DNA of 57,208 bases, counting the filler, from Trichosphaerium sp. ATCC 40318 (Eukaryota > Protista > Tubulinea), in the NCBI GenBank assembly GCA_038496445.1. It is 2 parts of 2 records of this genome, joined end to end, with 100 filler letters (N's around TTAATTAATTAA, not from the genome) between each part and the next. Parts side by side here need not be neighbours in the genome. Positions count along the whole stretch, not along the records: positions 25,749 to 57,208 come from JALMLS010000265.1; 1 more part is not named here. One strand, 5' to 3'. The notes under the pieces were generated by a model. The model did no database searches and was not told the DNA's origin. It saw only the letters and a list, made by a program, of their open reading frames with translations. Shown one piece after another: positions 25,749 to 55,559 of the stretch; positions within the stretch are counted from its first letter, which is position 1; each line of letters begins with the position of its first letter. The translations under genes were made by a program, and so were the position numbers.

Positions 25749-27700
25749 TCTATCTAAACGTACTGGTACATAGTATGCGATAATCATTGCAACAATGATC
25801 AATAGTATGAATCAACACACAGCTAGGCCAATGACCAAGTACTTCCACCAACCTGAACACGTGTTTTGATGCTCATAGCAACTGAGAATTTTGAAGATGT
25901 CTGTTTGATTGAAGATTCTACTTTTTTACAACTATCACTATGAACAAAAAGTATATCTGAGAATCCATCTGTTGAATTAATACAACTGTACTCAAATAAA
26001 GTTCGCTCTGTGTCTTGTTTCTCATCCGTATGGACAACAAGTGTTCCAGAAGGAGTAAAGCAACCTTTTAAAACAATGTGAAAGTATGAGTATGACGTTT
26101 CAATACCTGTAATGTTGACACGTCCTCCTTCACGAAAAGTGACCTTGTGGTTTGTTGTGGAGTTGTAACTTCCATTAATTGCAATTGATCCGTTTATCTC
26201 AATAGTTAGTGGCAACCCAAAGGTTGTAGGACCACTCATTGGTGCAATTGTTTGGGGCTTTGTTGTGTGATTTTGCTGGCACTACAGTTGGACTCATACC
26301 GGTAGGAGGAGTAGGCGGTGCACTTGGCGTGTCTCGAAGAAGACTAAACTGAATTAGGACCACATAAAAATAACTGTTGTACGAATTTCGCTGTTGAACA
26401 TTTGCGCCAACTATAGACACAGTAACATTGTTCGTGGAAATAACTGGACCATATCCGTTGTTAAAGTCAAAAAAGTAAAGTAAATCAGGATTCATTGTAT
26501 TAGGAAGTATGCCAATTCAAGAAGCTCGTCATCTGATAGCTCCTTTTTTAAAACAATTAAAAAATAGTGAAAAGGTTGTTGTTAGTACTTGTTCCAAATA
26601 CTCAAGTTGTCAATGTCACCCTACAACAGTGGTTCAATAAGATATAAAAGTTTAAAACAAATAACTTACAGAACCAAATCGAGCTACAGTACCATTACGT
26701 AGACAACCAATCACGAAATATCCTTTGTTGTTAAAGACTCATTAGTATTAACTATTTTAAGGGATTGTGTACCTTGTCTGAGTGAGAGAGGGGATGTAAG
26801 CCGTATACACTTCTGACTACTGTGTTGTTTGATATTGTCTTTAGTGAAATCTTATTTTTGGCTACATCACGTGAACAATAAACATAAATCTGTGTATTGG
26901 TCAGAACATATCCTTTACAATCTTACTTACCCATTCATTTGCAGGCACTTGTGGGTGAATGGTTGAATCAAAGGTGTTAGGATATTGATCCCAAAAGCCA
27001 TTGTTGAAAGTATCAAACGCAAGTTGCCGCTTGGATAGTGAGGGGAAGAAATTGCCAATGCTAAACATACTACCATTGTCATGACCTGTAAAGGATATTG
27101 TCGAAAAGATACTGTGTAGGTTGCAATCCGCGAAAGAACAGTCTCTACTCACATTAGAATAGAAGAGATATCATTAAATATAAAAGGCAACGAACTTGTC
27201 AAAGTTTATCCAGGCGCCAACTGAAATTATAGAGTTGCTATTGAAGTCTTCGCCCTCAATAAGAATACCGCCATCCCCCATATCACCTGAAAAGTGCGCT
27301 GCCATACCGGCTGGATTGCCTTTTACTTCTAAAGAAAGAAGTCAGTTTCTGGCGTTAAACAAATAATTTATTTCAATACATACCACTGGTGCATACTGTT
27401 GCCATAAAAAACGTGACCACACACAAATACTTCAAAAACGACTGGCGTTCCCTGGAATACATTTATAATTATTCTGGAATGTATGTTGTTTCTTTTAGTG
27501 GTTGCTATGATGACAGTGTTTGAAGTGAATAGAATTGGAGTTGGCTTAACAATTGTAGTGTTTGTTTTGTGAGCAACAAAGAACGCACAGCTCTTGGCGA
27601 TGAAGTGATGAACAGGTTGATTCTTGCCTTGACAGTTTTTAAATATATTTTCCAACAATGCGAATAAAACTAGCGTGAGAGTTCGTGTTGTCCAATGCAT
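25749..27700 (-). CDS. Secreted or type I membrane protein with a LamG/concanavalin A-like domain; 3' end truncated at the contig edge
   Basis: Signal-like N-terminus MHWTTRTLTLVLFALL; ISVGAWINF, VPANEW and GDIDNLSIWN..LSDDEL LamG-type motifs; Pro/Thr stalk; hydrophobic C-terminal segment. Confidence 0.6.
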
Positions 27701-27884: not shown

Positions 27885-28843
27885 ATGGCTAGACAACAAG
27901 TCTGTAAGGATAAGTATAATGCCACTTCATCATATATACGTACAACACTATCAAATGAGCCATATCAAAGGTGGACAAGTATAAACTGGACAAAAACGCA
28001 AGTGAAGTTAAAAACGCTGCAATGGCTCAGAATAAACCTATTTTATGGAAATTGTTGTTGATTACTTTGAAAAACCAGAAACGGGAGTTTGTTGACTTGG
28101 AGGTATGGCCAAAAAACAATGTTTTTTTTTTTTTTTTTTTGCTGTGATTTCGAAAAAAGGTAGAATCCTGCGAAGCGGGTTACTCTCTGATGAACGTGTT
28201 ATTGATCGTATAAATAGAGGATTTATACCTTATGCTCTTAATGTAACAGATGGAAGTCATATGTTCCCTGTTAATGATATATCAGCAACTAAGGAGTTTC
28301 GTCGAATTCAAAAAATTCACCCTCATTTTAAAAAAGGATTCGCTAGCATCTCCTTACTGTCACCTGATGGAAAGTATAAACTTGGTACTATCGATCCTGT
28401 TCGCGAAAATGTACGCCTATTTTTTTTTCTCCAAGTCACGTGATAAATTAATCTTGTTGATTTCAAAAAAGATGGAGATGCAACTTTCCTATGCTGCTTT
28501 TGACGCTTGGGTTATAAAGTGTATGGCGAAATTTGAGCTTGTAAAACAAATGGAAGCGAAATTCCAATCCGGAAACATGGGGTGGTATGAAGGATATAGG
28601 GAAACTGACAAAGCAAGTACGTAAAACGCTTCTCAAAAACTTGAAATATTGATTGTCGTGGTAGGGATTCGCAGAAGGCTTTGAGTGGTTTAGAAATTGT
28701 AGTGATTTATTGAAGCAATTAAAAGCAGCTAATACTACCGATGACGATGTTATAGACATAGCTAATTGTGGCTTACTTGGTAAGCAATGTTGTTTGCAAT
28801 AAACGACGACAAGTACTACTGTTTAATAGCACAACCGAAATGA
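27885..28843 (+). CDS. Thioredoxin-fold selenoprotein (SelN C-terminal-like, CU motif)
   Basis: MEIVVDYFEKPETGVC[TGA 28093-28095]LG-intron 28103-28159-GRILRSGLLSDERVIDRINRGF resembles the SelN SCUGSGRTLR region; SECIS-like hairpin downstream. Two homopolymer indels must be assumed upstream of the Met at 28045; true start uncertain. Confidence 0.75.
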
Positions 28844-28868
28844 TGAGCTTGCTCCTCAACAACTAGAC

Positions 28869-28941
28869 CAACAACTTGCCATGAAGGATGTGCACAAATC
28901 CCTTTTTTTGGGCCTGCACTACCTGACTTTTAAACTTGTTG
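28869..28941 (+). promoter_or_regulatory. Eukaryotic SECIS element (type II)
   Basis: Helix I CAACAA/TTGTTG; core ATGA (28881) and TGA (28924); helix II AGGATGTGCA/TGCACTACCT; unpaired AAA 11 nt after the core; mini-stem CCC/GGG. Confidence 0.8.
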
Positions 28942-29276
28942 TAAATTGTTTTTGAATTAATAAAGCACCTGTTCTTGGCTTTTTCATGCTCAAAATACTA
29001 AGCATTTTTATCATTAACTGATTGCTGTTACCTTTGTGTTCGAGTTTGAATAACAGCACTTCGAATTAGCACGTTTGCATGTCAAAGTTCAACAATGGCT
29101 TTTGACATAATACAACTTGGGTATATTTACAAAGTGAGCATTCTTTTGATAAAGTGGTACTTGTTTATTCAAGTTAATTGACGAAATACCTTGCGACCTT
29201 ATTGGGTCATAATGGCACGACCAAGGAAACTACCGTTCTGCAGACTTATAAAAAGTAAAAACTGCTTTGATGCTGC

Positions 29277-29507
29277 TCAACGAAAGAACCATTCCTCTCA
29301 ATCCGGCTACACAGTTAGTATGTCTCAAAAACGAAATAATCATGTGAAGTTCGTAAGGTAACCATAAAAATCGATGTGCGTTTTGTGGTGTCTGTTACAG
29401 TCATATCAGCATCATCGTAACTTTACAACCGTCTTTCTACGTTCCTGTTATTTCGTTTAGACGTACTAACGTTGTAGCCGGATTGAGAGGAATGGTACTT
29501 TCGTTGA
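29277..29507. mobile_element. ~231-bp MITE-like inverted-repeat element
   Basis: ~35-bp near-perfect arms TCAACGAAAG(A/T)ACCATTCCTCTCAATCCGGCTACA, extending to ~60 bp imperfect; TSD not resolved. Confidence 0.7.
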
Positions 29508-46130: not shown

Positions 46131-49100
46131 ATGTCTAAACGAAAGAATGGCTCGTCAGGCAGTAAGAATAAGCGTAAGAGGCGTAAAAAGTATGATAAAG
46201 ATTTGGAAATGGTACAGAAGGCAGAAAAGCTTGAGCAAGAAATGAGGGAGTTAGAAGCGCTTAATATGCTTCAATTACAGGTACGCAAGCGACATAAGGA
46301 GATGTTCAATTAAATTTAAAACGCAGACAACAGAACTCGTTGATTCCGTTGTTCCAACGTCTGGAACATGCGACGCCTTCGTAAAAAACCTAAAACAAAG
46401 CGCTTTGGACACAGTGAAACAAAAAAAGGTAACAACTCGCCCATACGCGTCCATAATACATAGTAATACAGCTGACATATCTAAAAAGCTATTGTGGAAA
46501 AACCTAGAGAAGTTCGTTCCACCAGAACAGAAAAGCAAGTGTCAACCTTCAGACGCTATCAAAATGGCTAAACCAGACGGCATACGCCTCGTTGGTTCAT
46601 ATTTGCTAGACACGATCATTATATCGGAAACAACAAACGTTGATGTTGTCGCTATCGTTCCAGCCTCGTGCCTACATTTGGATGATCTTAATGCACGCAC
46701 TTACGAGAAAGACATACTGATGTATGCTGCTGGTATGGCTAAACATGTCTCGGATTGGTACGAAGAGATCTTTTAGTTATTTTTTTTTTTCGATTTTTCC
46801 AGAATTGTTTTATTTTTTATTTCGCTAATGGTGAATCATGTAGTGGTTATACATGCTCTGTAGTACCAAGCACTATAGATGGTAGATCACCAATGCTAAA
46901 AATTGCAGTAAAAGGATCTAGTAGCGTAGCATTCGCATGTAACATCCATTTTGGACCTTCAACTCAATTTTTTATCGAAAATGAAGATGTATTGGACGAT
47001 GTTGAAGATCACTTGAGAACGCGTCTACTACGTGAGATGCTTATGTTCCATCACTTGGAACTTGCACATCACTATCTAGACGATCACGAGAACGTTAAGG
47101 AAGCGATAGTACTTGCAAAGGTGTGGCTAGAACAAAGGGATTTATCAACTGGCTTCGATTCTATTAAGGGTTTTATTGTCACCATGCTTGTAGTACATCT
47201 TATCCGCGGTGGTGTTAATGATGGTGCACCACCAGTGCATATTTTTCAGCAATTTCTTCACTTAATACGTGCGTTTGGCAACCAGCAGTATAGCCTTTGT
47301 TTAATCGTTTGATTATTGTTAACTTTTTTTTGATGTTTATTTTAGACCAACAGTTTAACACTGTCATTTATATGAAGCCATTCACTCAAGATGAAGTTGA
47401 CGCAGCAGATCTTATTTCGTTGTGTGAACAATTTCCAGCACATTGTGATAACACTTCTGGGTTTATTGATCCTTCTGGTAGTATTGATTTGGCCATGTTT
47501 TTGGGTTTGCAATACCAAGCAAGAGTACGTTTGTTTAGCATATTTTTTTAGCAATTTTGTGAGCGCACGTGCAAATGAATGTAAGTTTGAGCGTTTTATG
47601 TGAAAAGAATTTGTAGCGTTACAATTTGAAAAGCAGCACAAGACCAAAACAAAATTTACTTTTAATCAGAATCATTTGTGGTTCGTGCTTCATTTTCCAT
47701 CAATACATTTATTTAAGCAATAAGTTTAATTTTCCGTTTTTCGTTCCTTTTTGATTGATTTTGAGCATTGTAACGGATCCTTCGAGTTGGTAGTACTTTG
47801 TTCATAACAACTTGGGTCGTATAGCTCAGCTGGTTAGAGCACCGTGCTAATAACGCGGGGGTCCAGGGTTCGATCCCCTGTATGACCAAGAACCTTTTTG
47901 CCCATCACCGTAGCATGAGGTGTTTCTCATTATTCTTTTGTGAGTGCCGCCACTCTCTAATGATTAGCGCACATTGTCACAAAACTGTATTAAAAACGGT
48001 GCATTACATGGGCTGTGGTGGTGACATTAACTTTTTTTTTTTTCAGTGTATGTAGAAAATTTTGTGCTAATTTTTCCTCTCCCGACTTTTTTCCTTGCAT
48101 CCCTAGCACTTTTTACAATTTTTTTAAGTTTCTAAGACAGCCTAACATTTAACACATCGTGTTGTTGGTTTTTTGTCTCAGTTGTTGATGTCCTCTTGTG
48201 TTACGCATCTGTTCATTCATATTTTTTAATTTTTCTTTATTATTTTGATTAGTTTTCTCATTTTTTTTGCTTTTAGGCAGTCACAGAAGCCGCTAGAACA
48301 CTTGTGTATATGCAAAACTATAAGAACAACTTTTTCGAACGTGTTTTTCTTACAAAGACTGGGTTCTACTACGATTATGACTATTATCTTAGGTACCTCA
48401 ATTATTTTTTTGGTTTTGTACTAATTTCCACTTTAGGATAAGCTTGGATGGTAATCGTCATTACAATGTAGCTTCAATTATATCGCTTCTAAGGCGTGGT
48501 TGGAAAGATAGGGTTTCATCTCTTCATTACGTTGTATCTCAGAAGCCAGCTTGTCTTGTCGTTGGCATGCGATTAGCGCCAACATGTTTTGCACCTGTCG
48601 ATAAAGGACCTGAACCAAGAGATAAGCAAGCCTCGGCAGAGTACTTACAATTATGGGGCAAAAAGTTACCACAAATCCGTCGATTTAATGATGCTAGCAC
48701 AGTTTATGCAATTGGTACGTTACAATTGTTTAAGTTGGAATCTTGCCGATATTCTTTGGTTAACATGTTCGATTTAGTTTGGGCACCTGTTTTAGAGGAG
48801 TTAAAAACGACAAACACAGTTGAGGCAATTGCACGATATCTGCTCTCTCATCACTTTGGCACACCACATAAACACGTAGAGTAAGTAGATTATACACTTA
48901 CGAGCGAATCGTTGATGTAATTACAGGCAATGGGGTGTCTCTTTAAAGTCACTTTTGACAAAGAACAAAACGGACTTCGCAAGCAGTATAAGAACTCATG
49001 GTTCAACTCTTAGTGAGCTTCTAAAGAGACTAGATCTTCCTCTACCTATAACAGAGGTTCTATTCTATGGAGGTATTTGGACAGGATGCAGTCCTTATGT

Positions 49101-54650: not shown

Positions 54651-55559
54651 TTAGGTTAAGTTCTTTGATACTTTTCTTTTTTTTGCCTCTTCGTTGTTTG
54701 ACGTGCCACTGTGTTTTCTCTTGTTCGAATTATTTTCTTGCCAATCACACCATTCTTTCCATTGCTGGGCATGTCGTATTCCGCTCTGATATACTTTTCC
54801 GGGTACAGTGCATCCGGATATGTCCTGGCACTTTTCGCAAAAACAAGACCATCTTTTGTATTCACCTGTATTCCTCCTTGAGAGCTTTCCTCCGCACTCA
54901 CGGCATTTGAAAAACTTGTAAGCCATCCAATAAGGGCGTAGCTTAACGCTTCTAACCTTGGTACCATACATTATCATCGAAAACTGACGTGTACAATCAA
55001 CAAGTTGATTCATCTTCTCTTTGTCCAAATCGCAAAACTTCGTTTCTGGGTGTACTTTAGCGCGAAACAAAGCTTCGTTCTTTATGATGTTTCCAACACC
55101 ACCAAACTTTGTCTGATCCATCAAAACATCGCATACCATAGAATCAGAATCCTTACACGTGTCGATCACGTGCGATTTATCAAAATGAGTTGAGCAAATA
55201 TCAAAGCGTTTGTCAATAGTTTTCAACTTTGGGTCGTCCTCCGACCACCACTGGAGTGAGCAGTTACAGAATAGAACACGTGATGACGAACCCTCAATTT
55301 GTAGAGAAAGTCTAATAGTTCTAGGATCAGCCCTTCCGAACCTTACTGAGCCATGCATCATGAAGTGGACGCGTAATAAGCCGTTCCCGAAGTCCAAGAA
55401 TAAGGTTTTACCGTAACTCCAAACTTTTTTGATCGTTTTATCGACAAGCGTCGATTTATCTATTTGTTTCGTGTTTCCTGCTACCGCTTTTACTTTCTTT
55501 CCTTGACATACGTCTCTAGTTGCTATTTTATATCTCTTTAATGTAGGACCTTCTACCAT
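54651..55559 (-). CDS. Fpg/Nei family DNA glycosylase/AP lyase (NEIL3-like MVEGP N-terminus), intronless
   Basis: 302-aa ORF; MVEGP, GKTLFL, HFMMHG, H2TH DQTKFGGVGNIIKNEALF, zinc finger CREC...FCEKCQ. Confidence 0.92.
   Translation of the reverse strand: MVEGPTLKRYKIATRDVCQGKKVKAVAGNTKQIDKSTLVDKTIKKVWSYGKTLFLDFGNGLLRVHFMMHGSVRFGRADPRTIRLSLQIEGSSSRVLFCNCSLQWWSEDDPKLKTIDKRFDICSTHFDKSHVIDTCKDSDSMVCDVLMDQTKFGGVGNIIKNEALFRAKVHPETKFCDLDKEKMNQLVDCTRQFSMIMYGTKVRSVKLRPYWMAYKFFKCRECGGKLSRRNTGEYKRWSCFCEKCQDISGCTVPGKVYQSGIRHAQQWKEWCDWQENNSNKRKHSGTSNNEEAKKRKVSKNLT

Follow-up and report, generated by a model that had tools for sequence, protein, structure and literature searches.

A selenocysteine-family gene with a frame broken at three homopolymers in Trichosphaerium, probably recently disabled or locally mis-assembled

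Results

The gene and its surroundings

The window analysed here is a stretch of 57,208 nucleotides from Trichosphaerium sp. ATCC 40318 (assembly GCA_038496445.1), and the gene described below lies in its second part (positions 25749–57208), a eukaryotic piece of 37% G+C. Using tblastn of homologues against the locus we identified four exons on the plus strand, spanning 27885–28802. Exon 1 (27885–28102, +) starts at the ATG at 27885 and was delineated with the parts of P0013, L002 and L006 that precede the selenocysteine (Sec) position, together with frame translations; the homology occupies one frame at 27885–27995, another at 27995–28042 and a third at 28042–28102. Intron 1 (28103–28159, +; 57 nt, GT..AG, phase 1) has its donor GT at 28103–28104 and its acceptor AG at 28158–28159, and contains a run of 19 T bases. 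Exon 2 (28160–28410, +) encodes 83 aa and forms the conserved core of the protein (..LSD..VI..N..FIP..NVT..FP..GFA..G), supported by HMMER matches of 33–46% identity.

Intron 2 (28411–28471, +; 61 nt, GT..AG, phase 0) leads to exon 3 (28472–28616, +), the first part of which was placed by tblastn with P0003 and P0015 and the second with P0013, P0014 and P0020, the frame switching at a G4 run. Intron 3 (28617–28664, +; 48 nt) ends at an acceptor, tag/GGA, supported by homology in tblastn and read in the sequence. Exon 4 (28665–28802, +) finishes with ..CGLLGKQCCLQ at the stop TAA (28800–28802), and aligns with ..TGLLGRY.. of P0013 and with P0003. An extra intron at 28781–28830, which would end the gene at the TGA at 28842–28844, is possible, but the homologues align through GLLGK. 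Further downstream, the AATAAA at 28959–28964 (+) is a likely polyadenylation signal. We also observed that two of the three introns end in AAAAAAG, not in a pyrimidine tract followed by AG. With about 70 residues ahead of the Sec position, the full protein would be ~246 aa by homology, in keeping with the short stand-alone thioredoxin-fold protein proposed in the initial annotation. Database searches with this gene used its exons singly rather than the joined, spliced protein.

The host is a eukaryote with introns. A neighbouring ABCG-type gene has six exons separated by GT-AG introns of 49–60 nt, with Walker A, signature, Walker B and H-loop intact. On the minus strand at 54651–55559 lies an intron-less open reading frame of 302 aa for a NEIL3/Nei-like DNA glycosylase, which starts MVEGP and contains a zinc finger; with no more than 39% identity in its best database matches, it indicates a host without a close relative in the protein collection. 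The sole tRNA in the ~31 kb piece, a tRNA-Ile (AAT) at 47815–47888 (+), lies between the exons of, or beside, an Nrap/NOL6-like gene (~46.4–49.7 kb).

A predicted selenocysteine codon in a family truncated by gene callers

The Cys codon TGT at 28090–28092 and the TGA at 28093–28095 (+) can be read directly from the sequence. Frame translations showed that the frame containing this TGA is the only one of the three that runs on into exon 2, both of the others meeting a stop within ~20 codons of that exon, and that the product across the 57-nt intron junction is GVC-U-LGG/RILRS. Both translations and splice sites therefore agree with the initial annotation, which had read TGT-TGA in frame with the next exon to give GVC-U-LGGRILRS. 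The in-frame UGA is flanked on both sides by conserved coding sequence, each flank aligning with homologues. We considered whether TGA might be a sense codon in this genome; none occurs in frame in the ABCG or NEIL3-like coding sequences, and the stops checked (3/3) are TAA.

An exhaustive HMMER search with exon 2 against 1.84 billion representative proteins returned 23 matches, 18 of them true homologues with 33–46% identity and five unrelated repeat proteins. Either 12 or 13 of the 18 (proteins P0005–P0023) start at a Met aligned six residues after the TGA, which would be the classic footprint of gene callers halting at a Sec codon. The truncation by standard gene callers that had been anticipated for this gene is thus borne out for the family. 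We then took the DNA of the homologous proteins and of further relatives and translated it upstream in frame. At 11 loci (L001/L015, L002, L006, L008, L010, L013, L014, L016, L018 and L019) the aligned codon is TGA, preceded in nearly all of them by Cys and flanked on either side, in a single frame, by conserved protein sequence, as in EVC-TGA-FGGRVMR, AVC-TGA-LGGRL and KHC-TGA-PGGRAMR. These loci include bacterial-looking and eukaryotic ones. The full-length proteins P0013 (complete at 278 aa) and P0022 have Cys at the Sec position, so that homologues of both the Sec and the Cys kind, as were looked for, align at the TGA.

One of the 11, L019, was transcribed in a cultured marine protist (MMETSP); its TGA is in frame, its 3′ UTR contains a SECIS-shaped hairpin, and it has a long low-complexity N-terminal extension. 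In a Cys paralogue transcript from the same MMETSP sample (L020, 278 aa; JGI 3300016894) we observed no SECIS in the 50-nt 3′ tail. Sec and Cys forms are thus expressed side by side in one protist. Together, the loci with TGA or Cys, the truncated entries, L019 and the hairpins described below constitute the standard comparative evidence for a selenoprotein family. On this evidence we assign the TGA at 28093–28095 as the predicted Sec position of a widespread, uncurated thioredoxin-fold family. Searches of Pfam, NCBIfam and PDB sequences with the exons gave nothing above threshold, and neither exon 2 nor the family alignment brought up anything new in word-index protein searches. The family has no Pfam or NCBIfam model, its weak Pfam matches all being sub-threshold. 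Two eukaryotic members, P0003 and P0016, carry a C-terminal WW domain after a Q/N/P-rich linker.

A SECIS-like hairpin downstream of the stop codon

Folding, and a pattern scan with shuffled controls, identified a SECIS-like hairpin of type II shape at 28869–28941 (+), with the AATAAA 18 nt beyond it. In the fold of 28862–28950, helix I pairs 28869–28874 with 28936–28941 (6+2 bp), the AUGA of the core (28881–28884) sits opposite GA (28925–28926) in an internal loop, and helix II has 8 pairs in 10. An AAA at 28896–28898 lies 11 nt past the core, and a CCC/GGG mini-stem gives the structure its type II character. The elements of a SECIS in a 3′ UTR, namely the AUGA core, apical AA, GA and two helices, are therefore all present by folding and pattern scan, as first described for this locus (ATGA/AAA/GA with both helices). 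The spacing is different: the hairpin had been placed ~25 nt from the stop, and we find that it starts 67 nt past the homology-supported TAA at 28800–28802. The shorter distance fits only the model with the extra intron (28781–28830, TGA 28842–28844), which the homologues do not favour. The first candidate upstream, an AUGA at 28841, was rejected, as shuffled sequences fold equally well (z = −0.3) and its core and helix II do not adjoin.

The fold of 28869–28941 is moderately better than that of shuffled sequences (z = −2.1; 5 of 200 shuffles equally good). With our own pattern scanner the hairpin is the single 'strict' match in 62.9 kb (both strands). Dinucleotide shuffles gave 0.69 strict matches per 62.9 kb, which corresponds to ~0.005 for the 500 nt that follow the stop on the sense strand. 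The same scanner found hairpins at the equivalent place behind L002, L004/5/12/17, L007 and L019, and that of L019, in an AT-rich mRNA, is thermodynamically no stronger than the one in the window (z = −1.3). Rfam cmscan of the whole piece and of 28600–29500 (E ≤ 10) gave no SECIS match. A control on L002, L004, L007 and L012 was blank too, and this negative is uninformative because Rfam misses the strong hairpins behind L002, L004 and L007 as well.

Hairpins of other kinds lie close to the TGA in some homologues. The bacteria-like members L013 (815–875), L016 (2480–2540) and L018 (1226–1286) have a common hairpin ~20 nt past the TGA, the conserved core of which is GCAGUGUGCUC or a close variant of it; it resembles a bacterial SECIS, and Sec decoding seems to occur in bacterial members too. 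In L002 (229–270) and L006 (1206–1247), which are intron-less, eukaryote-like members, a strong stem-loop starts 13 nt past the TGA (z = −4.6 for L006). An open frame of 398 codons upstream in L006 was considered as an N-terminal extension and set aside, since it lies in a different frame.

The reading frame is broken at three short homopolymers

Three runs, A5 (27992), T4 (28041) and G4 (28579), each break the frame by one base in this copy, so that its homology to the family is spread over three frames. The first (27992–27996, +; tblastn and translations) is one base short relative to the homologues and separates ..INWTK from NASEV..; its basis is the 14–15 residues that homologues have between the conserved W and the K of KPI. 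The second (28041–28044, +; tblastn) is likewise one base short and falls between ..NKPI and FMEIVV.., a junction that L008 reads as a continuous KPIFMEIVV in one frame. The third (28579–28582, +; tblastn) has one base extra, between ..FQSGNM G and GGMKDIGKLTKQ. The three frames of exon 1 accordingly read ..RWTSINWTK, NASEV..NKPI and FMEIVV..GVC-U in turn, the junctions overlapping by one base, and in exon 3 the segment GGMKDIGKLTKQ splices in phase to GFAEGFEWF.., as in P0013, P0014 and P0020. Compared with an intact gene, the assembled sequence is off by −1, −1 and +1 base. With its homology split over three frames the assembled copy cannot encode the full ~246-aa protein, and the intact hidden gene, open apart from its UGA, that the initial annotation had envisaged is not what the assembly holds.

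Introns do not account for the frame changes, as the homologous segments abut or overlap by one base. Programmed frameshifting was also rejected: we found no X XXY YYZ heptamer and no stop context of the Euplotes +1 type, and the shifts go in both directions. Among runs of at least 4 bases, 3 of 12 in this gene are off by one compared with 0 of 30 in its neighbours (Fisher one-sided p = 0.019), the neighbour set being the 909-nt NEIL3-like open reading frame and the six cleanly spliced ABCG exons, with A7, T8 and T6 runs among them. This makes a uniform assembly error unlikely. The homologous frames contain no stop other than the Sec TGA, and all splice sites and conserved residues are intact; with nothing damaged besides the breaks, any decay would be very recent. 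By rough arithmetic a pseudogene with three indels is ~40% likely still to be without a new stop, so the absence of new stops is not a strong argument either way. In the upstream minus-strand gene there is an 80-nt overlap (26202–26281) of two long open segments that lie in different frames; it could be due to an intron or to another frame break, and bears on the question of a local mis-assembly of the neighbourhood.

Predicted fold and active site

The AlphaFold model of the Cys homologue P0013 (pLDDT 76) contains, in order, N-terminal helices, a thioredoxin fold and long C-terminal helices. Cys83, the residue aligned with Sec, stands at the start of helix 1 of the fold (84–91), and by alignment the same place may be assigned to Sec in the window protein. 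Foldseek with this model gave the UAS domain of UBXD7, thioredoxins, DsbD-gamma, DsbH, ERp19 and AGR3 as the best matches in the PDB. In the ESM Atlas, the closest clusters are those of Thioredoxin_7/DsbH proteins and of a Verrucomicrobiota family that has no name; feature and structure searches of the Atlas gave only unnamed bacterial and Thioredoxin_7/DsbH clusters, none of them named SelN.

Proteins of the Thioredoxin_7, Thioredox_DsbH (DUF255)/DsbD-gamma, ERp19/AGR and UAS groups resemble the family in fold and in carrying the redox residue where helix 1 begins. In contrast to these, which use CxxC or have lost their cysteines, the family has an adjacent C-U pair, and it further differs in its two ends, a helical W..I.W element being conserved at the N-terminus and a long helical tail following at the C-terminus. 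It also falls below every Pfam and NCBIfam threshold for the curated thioredoxin families. The bacterial thioredoxin-like selenoproteins of the NCBIfam VPGUxxT family (NF041383) are similar in fold and in having Sec at the active site, but the match is marginal (E = 0.005; 16.6 bits against a cut-off of 275) and the motif differs.

Resemblance to selenoprotein N

Human selenoprotein N (SelN) has Sec462 in an SCUG motif, and Gly463, Arg466 and Arg469 are sites of disease mutations (PMC8967691, PMC3541580). In the window sequence C-U-L-G-G-R-I-L-R, the C, the U and the Arg residues at Sec+4 and Sec+7 coincide with those of the human protein, both Arg residues being nearly invariant in the family. 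The family also has a Gly at Sec+3, which we take to correspond to Gly465 of human SelN. The exact SCUG tetrad is not kept, the motif in the window being GVCUL. The initial annotation had called the protein SelN-like and without the long N-terminal part of animal SelN. The second point agrees with our model, which has ~70 residues before Sec and neither the transmembrane segment nor the EF-hand of that part. Of the first, the C-U dyad, Gly at +3, Arg at +4 and +7 and the thioredoxin-like fold stand; against it, none of the 23 matches of the exhaustive HMMER search with exon 2 (1.84 billion representatives) was a true homologue exceeding 330 aa.

The likeness is to the C-terminal thioredoxin-like domain of SelN, with which the family has in common the Cys-Sec dyad, the Arg residues at Sec+4 and Sec+7, a thioredoxin-like fold and a prevalence of Sec forms. 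SelN also has a hairpin by the UGA, the Sec redefinition element (SRE), and the stem-loops of L002 and L006 are similar to it; in the window no SRE-like hairpin was found (z = −0.4 for exon 2). Unlike SelN, the window protein would stand alone at ~250 aa, and the family occurs in bacteria-like contigs too. The searches run here detected no sequence similarity to SelN. SelN was considered animal-specific by Lobanov et al. (2007). SELENON has since been reported in a few algae and unicellular eukaryotes, almost exclusively in Sec forms (Jiang et al. 2020, PMC7539508), and these algal proteins may belong to the same family.

Discussion

We propose that the locus at 27885–28964 (+) is a four-exon gene of a widespread family with a Cys-Sec dyad as its predicted redox centre. 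In working eukaryotic members the SECIS hairpin of the 3′ UTR would recode the UGA to selenocysteine, and in working bacterial members the hairpin just past the UGA would do so. The selenol at the N-terminus of helix 1 would be the attacking residue of a thiol/selenol oxidoreductase and the adjacent Cys its resolving partner. We infer this chemistry from the predicted fold and from the interchange of Sec and Cys among the homologues. In the window copy the Sec codon, the six splice sites, the conserved residues, the SECIS and the poly(A) signal are all retained, but its frame is broken at three short homopolymers, and it is probably either a recently disabled gene or a locally mis-assembled one.

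Which of these two it is depends on whether the breaks are real, and we lean modestly towards real lesions. We give an even chance to the copy having been recently disabled, as a young pseudogene or null allele. Long-read consensus error, however, leaves single-base changes in homopolymers too, and polishing can fail locally; the homologous frames have no stop besides the Sec TGA, and every splice site and conserved residue is undamaged. It is quite possible, if less probable, that the gene is intact and functional and that the three breaks are local consensus errors, the true runs being A6, T5 and G3 and the product the full Cys-Sec protein of ~246 aa. Each break would then be a one-base homopolymer miscount in a gene whose splice sites, conserved residues, SECIS and AATAAA are all in place. 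The same explanation has to confine the errors to ~700 nt while 30 comparable or longer runs in the neighbours are correct (p = 0.019), and to runs of only 4–5 bases, where consensus errors are least expected.

A separate question is whether the protein is a true orthologue of animal SelN in which the transmembrane and EF-hand part at the N-terminus has been lost or was never present. The shared C-U, Gly at +3 and Arg at +4 and +7 would fit such an origin, as would the thioredoxin-like fold with a UAS domain as the top structural match, the algal SELENON reports with their near-constant Sec (PMC7539508), and the SRE-like stem-loop just past the UGA in L002 and L006. We nevertheless find orthology doubtful, given the HMMER search without a true homologue above 330 aa, the ~70 residues before Sec compared with ~460 in human SelN, and a window lacking an SRE-like hairpin. 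The link to SelN is one of motif and fold (C-U, Gly at +3, Arg at +4 and +7). 'SelN-like' reasonably describes the way in which the protein probably works, but membership of the SelN family is not established.

It is improbable that the lesions are real and a shorter selenoprotein is nevertheless made, from the ATG at 28045 through the Sec UGA and an unshifted exon 3 to an alternative acceptor at 28673–28674, which lengthens intron 3 to 58 nt and restores the frame of exon 3. That frame is indeed open from 28045 to the TAA at 28800–28802 (~193 codons, with GT-AG introns of 57, 61 and 58 nt), and the ATG lies near the start of strand beta-1, so that the canonical thioredoxin core would be kept and a helical N-terminal part of ~55 residues lost. 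Yet bacterial and eukaryotic members alike conserve the W..I.W/KPI region that would be lost, a segment of exon 3 that is conserved in homologues would be destroyed by its 12 replacement codons, and a rescuing AG is estimated to arise by accident with a chance of ~1 in 5. We consider it very improbable that this was never a selenoprotein locus, with a TGA that is simply a stop, or a Cys codon hit by a nonsense mutation, and a hairpin that is a chance AT-rich fold: the unmatched Rfam model, the moderate z of −2.1 and the Cys forms P0013 and P0022 could be read in this way, but Rfam is equally blind to the strong hairpins of L002, L004 and L007, TGA is the usual state of this codon in the family (11 loci), a Cys codon precedes the window TGA as it does there, and only ~0.005 hairpins this good are expected in the 500 nt past the stop.

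The initial annotation was right in kind, in that this is a Sec-family gene that gene callers would miss, and too optimistic about the state of the copy. With SELENON-like selenoproteins already reported in unicellular eukaryotes, the kind of protein found here is already known, and the picture at the level of the family, which spans bacteria and protists, is uncurated and is systematically truncated in databases, is the more interesting by-product. We suggest, as a tentative possibility, that this is an ancient stand-alone Cys-Sec thioredoxin-fold family of bacteria and diverse protists, its entries nearly all truncated at Sec, from which the catalytic domain of animal SelN was drawn. Systematic mis-annotation and the lack of a Pfam or NCBIfam model mean that a profile spanning the UGA would recover many hidden selenoproteins. 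In this genome, an intact SECIS beside a broken frame would be either a marker of recent selenoprotein loss or a flag of a local assembly fault. SelN is a human disease gene, underlying SEPN1-related myopathy, and to our knowledge neither its structure nor the way it catalyses its reaction has been worked out. If its Cys-Sec domain has a small and soluble relative that stands alone, and that occurs in bacteria and in natural Cys forms as well, structural work and enzymology would be eased, and the origin of the domain would be dated to before the animals.
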